Assembly (NCBI GenBank): GCA_964234715.1
Contig: OZ174281.1
Strand: one strand, 5' to 3'
From: Podarcis melisellensis
Lineage: Eukaryota
Length of the DNA: 64,000 nt
The first letter of the stretch is position 1, and each line of letters starts with the position of its first letter. Below the pieces are notes generated by a model. It worked only from the letters and a program-made list of their open reading frames with translations, searched no databases and was not told where the DNA came from. Both the position numbers and the translations under genes were made by a program. Positions 6,220 through 45,929 of the stretch are shown one piece after another.

Positions 6220-6530
6220 TCCAAGATGGCTTGGGGCCCAAGCAACATAGGGCTGTGTATGCTGGTATTAACACGCTAAACAGAGTCCAGTAGGTCATTG
6301 GCAACCTGCACAGCGCTTTCAGGACTGATGACAGTCACATTGTGTTGCCTCACTAAACTAGCAGCTGCATTCTGCACCAGTGGCAACTTCCAGGCAGTTT
6401 TCAAGGGCAGTCCCACACAAAGCACATTGCTGTAGTCAAGATGGGAGGTCAACAGAGCATGGACAATTGTAGCCAGACTATCCCAGTCCATAAACAGCCA
6501 TAGCTGGTCAACAAACCAAAGACGAGCATA
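6220..6530 (-). mobile_element. Old L2 RT fragment
   Basis: LATIVHALLTSHLDYSNVLCVGLPLKTAWKLPLVQNAAASL. Confidence 0.75.
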
Positions 6531-16730: not shown

Positions 16731-17473
16731 AAGGTTTCCTGCTCTCCTTATCAAACAGAAAATAACTGCACGGTAACTTTAACATCTCTTTCAGTTGGTA
16801 GATCAGGGAGAAAAGGGATGTCCAACAACAGTACCTATGGTGACTTCAAATGAGACAGACTTAGCAGTGGGGAGCTGAGTCAACCATCACCATTTAACAT
16901 TTGTACAGCTCTTGAACATTCAAAGTATGTAACATAGTCTTTAATCCGTACCCAGTAAAGTAGACCATATCCTCCTAATCTGTATTATGGGAATGAGGCC
17001 AAGATATAATGGTCTGTCTACGGTCAAGTACACAGAATGGGTGAACTGTGCAAACACACACGCAGTTCAAGTATTCATGCTCAGTAAAGTTCTGGTATTG
17101 GAATGCTTAGTTTACATTGTCAAATACCTAGAAAGCTGCTCTGTTTAGTATCTGCCAGAGTTTTATTCATGGAGATGGGTGCTAAACATTCCTGATTCTT
17201 TGAGTGGACTACTATCAGACAGATATATTCTTCAATGTTGCTTAGTACTCACATATCTCCATACTGCCCCTTTCCTCATATATTATTAACCTTTTACAAT
17301 GGACATCTCAGGTGTCAAGTTATGCAAGGTACGTAAGGGGCAAATGAACAAGTGCCATTTTAATTATATGCTGATAAACTGCCTTTGAATTGCTGGCTCG
17401 GCTGAACTGCTAAGGTTAGAAAACTTCAGAGCTTTACAGATCAAGAGCAAGATAAACTTATCAGCTACTTTAC

Positions 17474-18127
17474 CTTTACAGCCTGTGTCTGAGCTGAATG
17501 GGAAAGGACAGAACTGGGATGGACAACTCTGATCGTGATTGGTTTCCCAGCAACGGGCATTATGGATTGGAGAGACGCGGTCACTGCTGTTGTAGCAGTT
17601 GGTGCAGCAGTAGTCAAGGTTGGCTTCAGAGCTTGTAGAGATGTTGCTGTAGCAGAAGATGGCGGCTTTACAGAACTAGAAGCAGTAAATGCAGGTGATG
17701 ACGACATTGCAGGGGTACGGACTGGTTTCACAACCTGGAGAGAAGTGGTACCAGTTGCCACCATTGCAGTGGAGGAGACTGGATGTACAGCTCTCACAGT
17801 AGTTGGTTTAGTGGAGGGAACGGGACTGGCACCTTGAAGGGAGAGTGTCCCTGACAAAACAGGCGTGGTCTGAACAAGCTGAAGAGAACCAGATCCTCTT
17901 GTCACTCCTGATGTACAGAAGACTGGGCCTGAAGTCTGTTGGGAGGGTATCCCCGTCGGAATTTTAAGAGAGGTCGCAGTCACAGGAGTGCTGGCAGCAG
18001 GTACCGAAGAAGCGGATGATGCTGTGCTACAAATAGGAGGAGCTGTTTGTGGTCCTGATTGTTGAAGACACTGCCGTATAAAGGCCTGCGCGTCAGGCAT
18101 TAATTGCCGTAAGGCAAGCATACTTTT
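17474..18127 (-). CDS. TAF4B: TAF4B exon 7 (KSMLALRQLMPDAQAFIRQC... long S/T/P/A-rich region ...QTQAVK)
   Basis: ORF 17465..18121. End of TAFH (ALRQL.P....FI.QC). TAG| acceptor, AAG|GTAAAG donor, 654 nt. Confidence 0.93.
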
Positions 18128-31100: not shown

Positions 31101-31339
31101 AAACACCATTTAACCTGCTCAGCACTCTGCAGAGTTTGAACAGGAGTCCCATGTCGTTGTCCCCACTCCCACCCCGATAGCAGAAATTGAAGCTGGGACC
31201 GTCTGCATGAGAATCAGTTCTTTGCCATGAAGCAATCGTCCCTGCTCTCATGTTTAGAAGGCACATCCCACCACGATGCCCACAACTCGCCACTAGTCCC
31301 CTGATGACTTGACCCGTTAGCTGAAAACAAAACAAAACT

Positions 31340-32370
31340 TGGCGGCGCCTGGCCTCATCCAACAGGAGCGCTGCCAGGAAAGGGAGAAGGCAACTCACCC
31401 GGCGGGATCTGGAAGTTCGCAGGTAGCTGTATCGTCACCGTCTGCGGGGCTTTGGGGGCTCCGGGCTGAGGGGCCGGCAGCCTGGTCCCCGCGCCGGGCG
31501 TCTTGGGGAGCTGCTGAGCCGGAGGCGCCCCTTTGCCCGCCGCGGGAGCGGACGCCGCTCGGGGCTGCTGGGCGACGGGAGGAGGGACTCTGCTGAGGGG
31601 AACTTCGGCGCTCAAGGCGACCGCCGCGGCGGGCGGCGCCGTGCTGTGGGCGCGCAGCGCAGCCGGGGCCTCGCGGAATCCCCCGGTCCCATTCAAGGCG
31701 GCGGCGGTGGTGGCGGGGCCGGCCGCCAAGGCAGCGAGCTCAGGAGACCCGGAGGGCAGGACCCTCCCCGGCGCGGCTGCTCCCGGGGTCGTCATGGAGG
31801 AGAGGGCGCGCGGCGGAAAGTGCGGGAGCCTTGCGGAGACTCCGAGCGAGTCCACAGCATAGCAGCCTCCGAGGGAGCCGGCGAAGCTTCCGCAGCTGAC
31901 GATGCGGCAAAAGCAGCGGCGGCAGAGTCCCCAGCGAAACAAGCTGCCTCAGAGGCTGCACCGCTCGCGGACCAAGCACGAGTTAGGGGCACGGCTGCAG
32001 AAAACACATGGTCACGCAGCCGCTGCCGGCTTCTCCTCCTCAGAGGCGCGCACGTGTAGCGCCAGGCACTTCTCGCCTGGAGCAGAAGGCTCCAGCCAGG
32101 ACAGCGGCGCACGCGAGCCGGCAACGCCCTACGGAGCCCCGCGCCGCCTCCAAGACCCGCCCCGAGGAACAGCCCCCAAGCGGCTCCGCTCTCCGTTAGC
32201 CATGTTTATATAGCCACGCGGGGCTCCCCGGCGCACGCGCCCTGGCTCTCCTGGCGGCTCATTGGCTACACCGGGCAACCTCGGCTGGGCGGCGTCACGC
32301 AGAGAGCACGGCCCCCCGCGCCGCTGAAGAACGCCGGAGGCGGAAAGTTATTGGGGAAATCGAACGCACT
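31340..32370. promoter_or_regulatory. TAF4B CpG island, probable bidirectional promoter
   Basis: Very GC- and CpG-rich. Minus-strand TATATAAA at 32212-32205, CCAAT at 32265-32261, NRF1-like GCGCACGCGC 32231-32240, GGGCGG and CRE half-site near 32287-32297, MYB-like TAACGG near 32193-32198. Confidence 0.85.
31399..31795 (-). CDS. TAF4B: TAF4B coding exon 1 (MTTPGAAAPG...RLPAPQPGAPKAPQTVTIQLPANFQIPPG)
   Basis: ATG at 31795-31793 in a CpG island. C-terminal part matches TAF4B RLPAPQ..TTIQFPANLQLPPG. Donor G|GTGAGT at 31398, phase 1. Confidence 0.88.
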
Positions 32371-32436
32371 TGGTGGTTTTCTCTCTCTTACACCCAAACA
32401 CACTCACTCACCGAAGGCGCACGTTGCATCGAAGAA

Positions 32437-32999
32437 GTAAGTGGAGTTGGTAATGCCAACAGAATGCCTATAATTTAGGGATTTGTCCTTTTAAAATGTT
32501 TGCTTTGGGGTGGTGTTTTCTTTAAATTGATATTACTTGGGGAGTCAGCGCAGTGCTCATCCACAGGCACCCCTGCAGCCTTGTAAATAAGCACCCCGAA
32601 AGTTACTAGCATGCAAAGAGGAAGAAGCTTTTGGAGGAGTGAATAACACAGCAGCGTGCTGTTTTTCCGTAAAGAGTGCAGAGGAAGGAAATGGAGCTCT
32701 AACCTTCCACCACCCACCTGCTCACTTTTCTGCATAAAATTTCCTGCACTGAGCTGCATGCATTTCCTTGTTACTTACGGCTTCCAGGCTAGTGGTTCAA
32801 TACAAGTCTACTGTGTTAGGGCTAACTTTTACCAGTTGAAACTCCCATTAAGCATTTTAGAACATTGCCAATTCTGTGTCTGTGGTTCATGCTGTTCATC
32901 ATCTTAATGCAGACCCAGTGTGTTAGTAATTTAATCCTTAAATATTTCCTACTACTATAATTGGTTAACACAATCTAGCATTTTTCTGCTTATCTGCAG
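32437..32999 (+). other. Putative 5' UTR intron joining the TAF4B CpG island to the MCTS1 retrogene
   Basis: GAA|GTAAGT donor at 32437. Branch-like TTAAC 32965-32969, pyrimidine tract TTTTTCTGCTTATCTGCAG ending at 32999. Confidence 0.5.
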
Positions 33000-33015: not shown

Positions 33016-33831
33016 AACAAGTAGAAATCGTGGCTTGGGCTTGAGAGTGGGAACAGGGCCTGCGTGGGAGCTGCTGCTGCTGCTGCTGCTGTCAGTCGCT
33101 GGCCTTCCAGGCCCTCAGTTCTTGGGGCTCTCGCGGAAACCCCAGCAAGATGTTCAAAAAATTTGATGAAAAGGAGAATGTGTCCAACTGCATCCAGCTA
33201 AAAACGTCAGTTATTAAAGGCATTAAGAACCAGCTGATAGACCAGTTTCCTGGCATCGAACCGTGGCTAAACCAAATTATGCCAAAGAAAGACCCTGTGA
33301 AGATAGTACGTTGTCATGAACATATAGAAATCCTCACAGTAAATGGAGAATTGTTGTTCTTCAGGCAAAGGGAAGGACCATTTTATCCCACGCTCAGATT
33401 ACTTCATAAATATCCATTCATTCTACCACATCAACAAGTTGATAAAGGAGCCATTAAATTTGTACTTAGTGGAGCAAATATCATGTGCCCTGGTCTGACG
33501 TCTCCAGGAGCTAAACTTTATCCTGCTGCTGCTGATACAATCATGGCAATAATGGCCGAAGGAAAGCAACATGCCCTGTGTGTTGGAGTCATGAAGATGT
33601 CGGCAGAGGATATTGAGAAGGTCAACAAAGGAATTGGCATTGAGAATATCCACTATTTAAATGATGGTCTCTGGCATATGAAGACATATAAGTGAAGAAG
33701 CAGGAAGAATCCATTGGATTTCAGCTGGGCCTGTTTTTAATTCTTCTTATAAAATGTGTGGCTAAATGTAAAATTTGTGGTGATGCTAAATAAATCAAAT
33801 GAATGCTGGGGGGGGGGAAACAAGTAGAAAT
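33016..33831 (+). other. Processed-mRNA insertion boundaries: TSD AACAAGTAGAAAT at 33016-33028 and 33819-33831
   Basis: Identical 13-mer on both sides of 5'UTR+CDS+3'UTR. Tail position occupied by G10 (33808-33817). Confidence 0.88.
33150..33695 (+). CDS. MCTS1: Intronless MCTS1 (MCT-1, PUA-domain translation reinitiation/recycling factor) retrogene, intact 181 aa
   Basis: Full-length [26 protein letters not shown]...[11 protein letters not shown] with no introns, stops or frameshifts. A at -3 (AAGATG). AATAAA at 33789-33794. Flanked by a 13-bp direct repeat. Confidence 0.95.
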
Positions 33832-34878: not shown

Positions 34879-35225
34879 AGGGACGCGGGTGGTGCTGTGG
34901 GTTAAACCACAGAGCCTAGGGCTTGCCGATCAGAAGGTTGGTGGTTCAAATCCCCACGACGGGGTGAGCTCCCGTTGCTCAGTCACAGCTCCTGCCAACC
35001 TAGCAGTTCGAAAGCACGTCAAAGTGTAAGTAGATAAATAGGTACCACTCCGGTGGGAAGGTAAACGGCGTTTCTGTGCACTGCTCTGGTTTGCCAGAAG
35101 CAGCTTAGTCATGCTGGCCACATGACCCAGAAGCTGTACACTGGCTCCCTTGGCCAATAAAGCGAGATGAGCGCCACAACCCCAGAGTCGGTCACGACTG
35201 GACCTAACAGTCGGGGTCCCTTTAC
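34879..35225 (+). mobile_element. Sauria SINE inserted into an old L2 fragment, 16-bp TSD
   Basis: TSD CTACCC(A/G)TGTATTTCA at 34862-34877 and 35226-35241. L2 peptide ALITSRLDYHNVLCVGLP continues after the SINE as QKL.LERNAAASLLTG. Confidence 0.88.
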
Positions 35226-36794
35226 CTACCCGTGTATTTCAACCAGAAGCTTTAACTAGAGCGGAATGCAGCAGCCAGTCTGCTTACGGGAGCAGATTAC
35301 TGGCAACAAGTTACCCCATTATATTATTGCTCTGTATTAAGGTTCTCCAAGACAACTGCCTTGCAACAGTCCCCCCCCCCACTTCTCCAGTACTGGAAAC
35401 AGCATGGATTGCTGTGGTAAATTTCTGTTTGATTCCTCTAAATCACCAGGCCCATACAAAATGAATGTGATCATGTCCAAAGTTTATAAGACTAAGGACG
35501 CCGGTGTGCAACAGCCTTTGCCAACCTCATGCCCTCCAGCAATTTTTGAATATTTTTTATCAGTCTCATCCTTTATAGCCATGTTGGCTGAGGCAGATGG
35601 CAGCTGTGAGCGTCATGAGGGCAGCAGATTGAGGAAGGCTGTTGTGCACCAAGCAAAAATTATTAAATGAAACTTCTCATCATCTTTCCTCACCTTACCG
35701 CCGTTAAGTTAGTATGCTTGTTCAGAGGATAGTAATACATTCTGAGGAAATATATATAATAAAATGGCCAATTGTATCTTTTATTAGGATCTTTTGATCC
35801 TAAGAGCTCTCAGGGTGCAATCCTATATACACTTATCTTGGATTAAGGCCTGTTGAACTCAGCAGGGCTTCCTTCTGAGTAGATCCATGTAGGATTGTAG
35901 TGCACTTTACCTTGAGCTCAGTGGGAGTTACTTCCAAGTAAAAGTGATTAGGATCAGACTGAACATTACGTAGATCTATGGCCAGACTTGTCTCAGTTCA
36001 GAAGAACCAAAATTATTGACTGCATGAAGAAAAACAAGCAAATTGACACAGAAGCGGATGCTACTCACAGCTTGTATTAACAAAATAGTTTACATGCTTC
36101 AAGTGAGGAAACTGCTCCCCTCCCCTAAAAATTCTGTGTATGTGCCATATTTTTCCATTTAATTTTCTTATGCCTTGAGTATATCTTTCCCACTGTGGCA
36201 GATGCACAGAAGCAATCATGAGAGCTGCAGTATGTTTTCCCTGAAATATTAATTGTAAAAACTATTCTTCAGAATTGTATGTTAACAAAACTGATTGTCA
36301 CACTGTGGAAATTAGGATGGTAATTTCCCCCTAAATAATACACAAAATTATGTTTTCATATGCTTTCCCAGAACCCTTTCATACCCATAATGTTCTCAAT
36401 ATGGGGCTTCTTACAGTATATTATAAATTAGCATCAATTACTATAGCTCACAGCATTGTCAGTCTAGAGACAGAGACAACAGAAGTCACATAACGTTGTA
36501 CCACCAGATGCTAGGGGACACCTTGTGCACTTCATGAATTTTCAATTGAAAGGCACAGTTGCCAGTTAGAATAATTTATATCAATTCTATACAGGTGTAG
36601 TTTGTTTAGCTCCTATTTAGCCAATCACTCATAACCATAATAGCTGGTTTTGTTGCACCAAAGCAAATGCTTGGGTTTCCTGTTGTTGTTTTGCCACACT
36701 GTGAAACCTAATATACAACTGATACATGATTTGAGGTGGAGAAAGCAAGTAAGTTTTATAGGGGTTATTGGCTGATTCCTAACTGGTCCCAAGA

Positions 36795-44899: not shown

Positions 44900-45750
44900 A
44901 GCAAAGATCCCACTTGAAACGGGACTGAGGGTTTCGCTTAGACGTGCTTTGCCGCACGAGCTGGAAGCTCGCTTTGCTTCTCGCGACTTGAAAGGGAAAC
45001 GCCAGGCTCAGAAAAGAGTGGGCTGGACCAATGATGCGAGGAACTCGGGGGGGAGGGGGCGGGAATAGATCAACAGAGAACTTCTCTCCCGACCGCCCCC
45101 TCCTCTGGGGCTGTAACATTTGTCATCGCTCGAAGGAGGTCGGGTAGGAACGTACCATTGTCGCAGCGAAGGGGTGCGCTCGCTAACAGTCCTCACGGGC
45201 TCATTTTCCGGACGGCAACGGGGACCGTTCCGTTTGGAAACGGAGCTACGGGGAGCTGAGTCGAAAGCAGCGCCGCGCCGCCGGGGCACGGTGGCGCCCG
45301 ATGTCGCCGTTGGCCAGGACGTTGCTCCGTCCCCTCCCCTGTTTTGAGAGTGGCGATGGCTCGGCCCAACGGGTAACCGCTTCCTCCTCCACAGCTCGCT
45401 GCTGTTCTTCCCAGGGCTTTGCCGCCGCTGTCGCCGCTGTGGCCTCAGAGGCGGGAGGGGGCAGGAAGAAGGAGGAGGAGCGGGGAGCCGCCGCGGTGCG
45501 CGCCGAGGCCCGTCTTCGCGCGGGGGCCCAAGATGTCGGTGGCGTTCGCAGCCCCCAGGCAGCGGGGGAAGGGCGAGATCACGCCGGCTGCCATCCAGAA
45601 GGTGGGCTGAGGGGCCTAGGCCGGGCCAGGCTGCCGAAGCCGGGCTGGGGCTCATTACGGGGGGGGGGTGAGGGAGGTCGGCGCCCCGGCTCGCCCCTGG
45701 GGCAGCTCGGGACGTTGGGAGCCCCCAAAAGTAGTCCTTCGCCGTTTTAA
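44900..45750. promoter_or_regulatory. SS18 CpG island promoter
   Basis: CpG-rich region around SS18 exon 1. CCAAT 45028-45032, TCTCGCGA (partial BANP/ZBTB33-type motif) 44979-44986, GC boxes. Confidence 0.82.
45533..45601 (+). CDS. SS18: SS18 exon 1 (MSVAFAAPRQRGKGEITPAAIQK)
   Basis: Canonical SS18 N-terminus, 69 nt, AAG|GTGGG donor. Confidence 0.97.
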
Positions 45751-45929
45751 TGTGGCGCTCTTCCTTTCTCTTTCCCTGTCCCAACACCTCCCCGCCTAAT
45801 GGAGGGGTTGCAGCTGTGGCAGCCCTGCGAGGTAGGCCGCTATTGTCACTTTCCCTAAGAAGGGGTTGACGGGAGGGGTGGAGGTGGCTTGAATATCCAA
45901 CACAGAGCTGCACCGACCTTCCACTTTAA

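Follow-up and report, generated by a model that had tools for sequence, protein, structure and literature searches.

An intronless MCTS1 copy upstream of TAF4B, retroposed on the Podarcis stem and kept under purifying selection at the protein level

The intronless MCTS1 gene that lies upstream of TAF4B in the window analyzed here (the whole stretch of 64,000 nucleotides introduced above) is a processed copy of a full-length MCTS1 mRNA that was inserted on the stem of the genus Podarcis. Its protein is under strong purifying selection, as strong as that exerted on the parental gene, while its UTRs and synonymous sites drift neutrally. The derivation from a full-length processed mRNA is very well supported, because the introns have been removed exactly and the homology is bounded by the leader and the cleavage site of the parental transcript; the assignment of the copy to the selected retrogenes and not to the pseudogenes is also well supported on the basis of the sequence comparisons described below. 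The account as a whole, which comprises retroposition in the Podarcis stem lineage, selection, a role of the predicted protein as a partner of DENR and transcription from the CpG island of TAF4B, is given a probability of about 0.8. Four lacertid genomes together show the donor gene, the insertion site, the empty site, an intact orthologue and selection at the protein level for one young retrogene. In all species comparisons the window copy was treated as that of Podarcis lilfordi (assembly rPodLil1.2), and the chromosome from which the window derives, taken as the 89.6-Mb chromosome of that assembly, corresponds by homology to Lacerta agilis chromosome 7.

The elements of the insertion and the neighboring CpG island are listed in Table 1. 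A preliminary description of this DNA had reported a single-exon MCTS1 ORF of 181 amino acids accompanied by a 5' UTR, an AATAAA signal and an exact target-site duplication (TSD) of 13 bp, all of which are indeed present in the window. The predicted protein contains a Pre-PUA domain (PF17832; residues 5–89, E = 3.8e-28) followed by a PUA domain (PF01472; residues 95–170, E = 3.4e-16) in Pfam, and this domain order together with a length of about 181 residues identifies it as a predicted member of the MCTS1/TMA20 family. Solved MCTS1 chains (PDB 5ONS, 6MS4, and 3R90) match it across residues 1–181 (E = 1e-122). The protein is 98–99% identical to MCTS1 proteins, including that of the parental gene (TMA20 family), with which it shares the layout of Pre-PUA plus PUA; an alignment with eutherian/human MCTS1 gives three replacements (E31D, V128A, and V132M), in keeping with the roughly three differences from the human protein given in the preliminary description. 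An identical protein is on record once, in assembly GCA_947686815.1, and public annotations of both P. lilfordi and P. muralis already include the gene; a full-text literature search returned no paper naming MCTS1 together with Podarcis.

Table 1. Features of the MCTS1 retrocopy and of the adjoining TAF4B promoter region in the window.
Feature	Position	Strand	Basis
Left TSD copy (AACAAGTAGAAAT), 13 bp	33016..33028	+	Exact repeat; single copy at the empty sites of Zootoca and L. agilis
Retroposed MCTS1 5' UTR (exon 1 leader with GCT/CTG repeat), without ATG	33029..33149	+	84% identity to parent exon 1 leader
Intronless MCTS1 CDS, 181 codons plus stop, ATG start	33150..33695	+	Pfam; alignment with parent
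Former exon junctions in the CDS	33160/61, 33313/14, 33411/12, 33545/46, 33613/14	+	Alignment with parent exons
Retroposed MCTS1 3' UTR	33696..33808	+	AATAAA at 33789–33794; alignment with the 3' ends of the parental gene in four lacertids and in Rhineura
Tail remnant, nine G then one A, at the poly(A) position	33809..33818	+	Window letters; 3'-end alignment
Right TSD copy	33819..33831	+	Exact repeat of left copy
CpG island with TAF4B 5' end	31200..32600	-	GC 0.64–0.76; CpG observed/expected 0.76–0.99

The parental MCTS1 of P. lilfordi comprises six exons, is located on another chromosome and adjoins C1GALT1C1 (record OX395140.1, 51.1 Mb), in agreement with the expectation that the parent would be a multi-exon gene elsewhere in the genome; in snakes MCTS1 is also multi-exon and lies between CUL4B and the single-exon C1GALT1C1. 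The snake C1GALT1C1 served as a handle to reach the parent loci, and the neighborhoods compared were those of P. raffonei (L007), P. lilfordi (L008), P. muralis (L009), Zootoca vivipara (L010), and the amphisbaenian Rhineura (L011), with parent exons mapped individually and then joined to count codon changes. Positions 33033–33808 of the window match the P. lilfordi parent across its six exons, and the five parent introns, all of them GT-AG, are absent from the copy to the exact base at the junctions. Homology starts about 120 nt 5' of the ATG, inside the parent leader, and ends at the cleavage site after AATAAA...GAATGCTG; beyond AATAAATCAAATGAATGCTG the parent genome runs into unrelated sequence, and the copy covers the transcript only, with neither promoter nor downstream DNA. 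Besides its lack of introns and its chromosomal location, the copy differs from parental MCTS1 in its upstream region, in its drifting UTRs and in a private replacement (V132M). The two coding sequences differ at eight positions in P. lilfordi (six synonymous and two non-synonymous), the UTRs add more than 20 sites at which copy and parent can be told apart, and identity to the parent amounts to 98.5% in the CDS and to 84–91% in the UTRs. The GCT/CTG repeat of the leader varies in length, with about seven units in the window copy and four to six in the parents (L007–L010) and in the P. muralis copy.

The sequence AACAAGTAGAAAT has two exact occurrences in the whole window, those that flank the copy, and its chance expectation there is about 0.23 matches with one mismatch tolerated. 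At the nick the bottom-strand sequence is CTTGTT/GA, which is compatible with the degenerate TTTT/A consensus of L1 and leaves the identity of the LINE unproven. A spliced, polyadenylated, full-length MCTS1 mRNA was reverse-transcribed into the intergenic site upstream of TAF4B, probably by the reverse transcriptase of an L1-type LINE through target-primed reverse transcription. The 13-bp TSD and the T-rich nick site point to this type of mechanism, and no A-run remains to add support.

The date of the event is given by the locus upstream of TAF4B, which was compared in three other lacertids (P. muralis, L013; Zootoca, L014; L. agilis, L015), so that two Podarcis species are represented; the orthologous loci were found with a 220-aa TAF4B exon (window 17468–18127, minus strand), which led to gecko TAF4B and from there to the lacertid TAF4B proteins. 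The insertion is shared by P. muralis at the corresponding position; a single-exon gene of 181 amino acids is called in it there, its left repeat is partly decayed and its tail consists of GGGG plus AAA. In Zootoca and L. agilis the site is empty and the flanks abut on one target copy, which reads AACAAGTAGAAAT in the former and GACAAGTAGAAAT in the latter. A maximum likelihood tree of leader, CDS, and trailer joins the retrocopies of P. lilfordi (the window copy) and P. muralis (support 98) to the group of the three Podarcis parents (99) with a support of 72, and Zootoca and Rhineura fall outside this group of Podarcis parents and retrocopies; the replacement A126S is common to all three Podarcis parents and absent from both retrocopies. 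On account of the filled site in P. muralis, the empty sites in Zootoca and L. agilis, the tree and the missing A126S, the insertion is placed on the stem of Podarcis, at a time when this lineage had already separated from Lacerta and Zootoca and P. muralis and P. lilfordi had not yet diverged. The flanks show a mismatch divergence of 3.7% between these two Podarcis species and of 4.2–4.3% relative to Zootoca and Lacerta, and for this reason the age of the retrocopy is close to that of the genus. An origin before the separation of Podarcis and Zootoca, hinted at by CDS site 48, was considered and is contradicted by the empty sites as well as by the tree and the characters of the UTRs.

The same evidence bears on the relationship with MCTS2, an imprinted retrogene of the X-linked MCTS1 located in an intron of H13/HM13 in mammals (PMC3107425). 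The preliminary description had proposed a separate squamate retroposition. Its separateness from MCTS2 is borne out by the presence of the copy in P. muralis and by the clean empty site in Zootoca and L. agilis, and a lineage-specific event did take place; "squamate" is too broad a term, the event being confined to the Podarcis lineage. In view of the empty sites, the grouping with the Podarcis parents and the location at TAF4B, the Podarcis copy is not orthologous to mammalian MCTS2 and represents a separate event.

The tail of the retrocopy is a run of G and not of A, both in the window copy (G9 + A) and in that of P. muralis (G4 + A3; L013, about 6410–6420, minus strand). The G-run seems to have grown within Podarcis at the expense of the A-run, and slippage following A-to-G changes may be offered as a guess at its origin. 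The run may be what is left of the original tail or may have taken its place. The tail had been described as aged, which is fair in that no poly(A) is left; that it consists of nine G and one A had gone unremarked.

The insertion site is intergenic and lies about 1 kb upstream of TAF4B, which is called on the minus strand and is thus head-to-head with the retrogene ORF; the edge of the CpG island is about 430 bp from the 5' end of the copy. Borrowing the bidirectional CpG-island promoter of a neighboring gene is a known route to retrogene expression. The window copy resembles the retrogenes that follow this route in having arrived without a promoter and in its divergent position at about 430 bp from an island, the sharing itself being putative. 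Transcription would most probably start in or near the divergent CpG-island promoter of TAF4B, which is the likeliest source because the copy brought no promoter and adjoins the island divergently. The Podarcis case differs from such retrogenes in that P. muralis, Zootoca, and L. agilis have 1–1.5 kb more DNA between the insertion site and the island, and hence the tight spacing is particular to P. lilfordi as represented by the window. The 1.0–1.5 kb missing from the window near 32829–32834 correspond to L013:7385–8939, L014:7590–8838, and L015:7932–8988, and their lack, which brings the retrogene nearer to the promoter, reflects either a deletion specific to this lineage or a collapse in the assembly. 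Within the extra segment of P. muralis lies a 348-bp repeat, which recurs in the window at 34881–35227.

With respect to function, the encoded protein would pair with DENR and promote the recycling of 40S subunits and re-initiation after upstream ORFs, and the copy would constitute a second, autosomal source of the MCTS subunit. This role is suggested by the identity of 98–99% to MCTS1, for which the complex with DENR has been solved, and by the activity of MCTS2, which forms a complex with DENR in cells and rescues re-initiation in vitro (PMC11790910). A different reading is that the copy was selected for a narrower or changed role, for example as a germ-line copy driven by the gonad-enriched TAF4B promoter that offsets a Z-linked parent in ZW females or at meiosis; we regard this as possible and, on balance, rather unlikely. 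The head-to-head position with TAF4B beside a CpG island is consistent with it, and so is the behavior of mouse Mcts2, which rises as the X-linked Mcts1 is silenced in pachytene (PMC3107425). Against it, no excess of gene movement off the Z has been found in birds or Lepidoptera (PMC3242482), and the Z-linkage of the parent on which such a role would depend is itself only probable.

Parental MCTS1 is probably located on the lacertid Z. The pointers are the gene block that CUL4B shares with MCTS1 and C1GALT1C1 in snakes, the mapping of CUL4B to chicken 4p, the homology of the lacertid Z with both the human X and chicken 4p + 17, and chromosome size, as the Z scaffold of P. lilfordi measures 50.6–50.7 Mb (with half coverage in the sequenced female) and the parent record 51.1 Mb. 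Size and accession order also allow that the parent chromosome is instead the homologue of L. agilis chromosome 14, which could reach a similar size after curation. KLHL13, LPAR4, GAB3, and MBNL3 have been named as Z-specific, and MCTS1 or CUL4B were not found under this designation in the searchable papers. An extended form of the idea is more doubtful than the narrower role as such: the linkage group of chicken 4p would have become a sex chromosome independently in therians (X) and lacertids (Z), and MCTS1 would have escaped from it twice by retroposition, from the therian X to give MCTS2 and from the lacertid Z to give the Podarcis copy, the latter being kept to supplement a Z parent that is hemizygous or meiotically silenced, in ZW females or in the germ line, by means of the gonad-enriched TAF4B promoter. 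If true, this would be a rare and mechanistically readable "out-of-Z" retrogene of a vertebrate; Z-linkage of the parent would bear on whether genes leave Z chromosomes as they leave the X, and the importance of the copy would grow if both Z-linkage and sex- or germ-line-biased expression hold.

The reading of the copy as a selected retrogene, whichever its precise role, is founded on the distribution of substitutions. Compared with the P. lilfordi parent, dS is 0.055, dN 0.0047 and dN/dS 0.084. Changes on the copy's own branch number 9 in 111 leader sites, 7 in 116 trailer sites and 6 in 543 coding sites, and V132M is the one coding change among these that alters the protein. In the retro clade formed by the two orthologues there are nine synonymous, two non-synonymous and 21 UTR changes (the last in 225 sites), giving an omega of 0.058. 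With the small counts that a total of 11 coding changes implies, the per-site frequency of non-synonymous changes is 17-fold lower than that of synonymous changes (2/431 vs. 9/112; Fisher exact test, p = 2e-5) and 20-fold lower than that of UTR changes (p = 1e-8), and selection on the protein is concluded because of this rarity; the synonymous rate equals that of the UTRs (p = 0.84). The orthologues themselves differ by eight synonymous and two non-synonymous substitutions, V132M in the window copy and M135V in that of P. muralis, both of which are conservative and fall within residues 126–135, the sole segment that is variable among vertebrate MCTS1 proteins. The purifying selection suspected beforehand thus finds support in dN/dS values of 0.06–0.08, which are not near 1; dS relative to the parent is not near zero, as it would be in a very recent copy, and the related species P. 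muralis has an intact ORF with no sign of a disabled frame.

These figures also make it very improbable that the copy is a neutral processed pseudogene whose frame has stayed open by chance. In favor of this reading, retrocopies are usually dead on arrival, the snake Ahaetulla prasina has a separate MCTS1 retrocopy in clear decay (see below), and at a neutral divergence of 3–7% a frame of 546 nt is estimated to remain free of stops in a fair share of cases. At the rate of the UTRs, however, the branch of the window copy should have accumulated about 30 non-synonymous changes and shows one, and the frame of 181 codons is unbroken in both species at a neutral divergence of 3.7%, besides the deficits of non-synonymous changes relative to the synonymous and UTR classes given above. 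An older UniProt model of P. muralis (P0056, 164 aa) was considered as a disabled orthologue or a second retrocopy and rejected on both counts, as it corresponds to the P. muralis retrogene protein minus 17 residues; its "intron" lacks a GT and begins where exons 2 and 3 were formerly joined, and the newer assembly of P. muralis contains the full frame. An exact look-up of P0056 gave no matching record, and the gap is read as a probable modelling artefact.

It is still less probable that the likeness of the CDS to the parent (98.5%, as opposed to 84–91% in the UTRs) has been upheld, in place of selection, by recurrent conversion with the parent gene or its cDNA as donor. The parent exons are separated by introns, so that conversion tracts would have to end at each junction; each of the retro orthologues has private synonymous changes, both copies are without A126S and a neighboring synonymous change common to the Podarcis parents, and the equality of synonymous and UTR rates in the copies is a pattern that conversion would have erased. 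No derived synonymous state was seen to be common to a copy and the parent from its own species. An artefact of assembly or of cDNA contamination, which can yield intronless copies in contaminated libraries, is hardly credible for a copy with private substitutions, a tail in decay and a TSD that occupies the same site with the same flanks in the independent assembly of P. muralis.

Selected retrogenes are a well-known class and MCTS2 is the direct precedent for the Podarcis copy. Like the latter, mammalian MCTS2 (Mcts2) originated from MCTS1 by retroposition of a full-length mRNA, and its protein, of 181 amino acids, has also remained near-identical to that of the parent through purifying selection, under which the mammalian Mcts family as a whole is placed (PMC3107425). 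The two cases differ in location, since the Podarcis copy is intergenic and head-to-head with TAF4B whereas MCTS2 resides within the H13 intron, and in age, the Podarcis copy being much younger with eight nucleotide differences from its parent vs. 81 between mouse Mcts1 and Mcts2 (PMC11790910). Imprinting of the Podarcis copy is not expected.

A further intronless copy of squamate MCTS1 of independent origin is annotated in A. prasina as "MCTS1-A-like" (P0071; L012:6001–8111, GCA_028640845.1). It is located antisense in an intron of DPH6, encodes residues 1–123 without introns before an interruption of about 1.6 kb, and has an identity of about 85%, non-synonymous changes being numerous and small deletions present. 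It is a decaying retrocopy to which a gene model has been given, and it illustrates the appearance of a copy that is not under selection.

MCTS1 has therefore been retroposed and then retained independently in two amniote lineages. MCTS1 is the partner of DENR in translation re-initiation, and the activity of MCTS2 has been shown only recently, in mammals, where it may account for the milder effect of losing MCTS1 compared with losing DENR. With the Podarcis copy, nature provides a second and much younger replicate in which the selective advantage of a spare MCTS subunit can be studied.

Several minor observations concern the parental gene and the surroundings of the copy. In the parent CDS, P. 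lilfordi (L008) and P. muralis (L009) differ at one of 112 synonymous sites; the divergence of their introns is 2.9–4.2%, and the retrocopies differ at eight synonymous sites. This hints at constraint on the synonymous sites of the parent, with small numbers and a P of about 0.08. No gene is called in the annotation within 10 kb downstream of the retrogene, and a GC-rich block resembling a CpG island at 45000–45900, about 11 kb downstream, is probably the promoter of the next gene. The public RNA-seq of P. lilfordi derives from five tissues (heart, kidney, liver, lung, and tail), none of them gonadal. On the minus strand at 31355–31942 the CpG island contains a long Ala/Pro-rich open frame upstream of the annotated start of TAF4B (about 30635), and the 865-aa TAF4B model of P. 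lilfordi, the N-terminus of which may be under-annotated, is 23–33 residues shorter than the corresponding NCBI models for P. muralis, L. agilis, and Zootoca.
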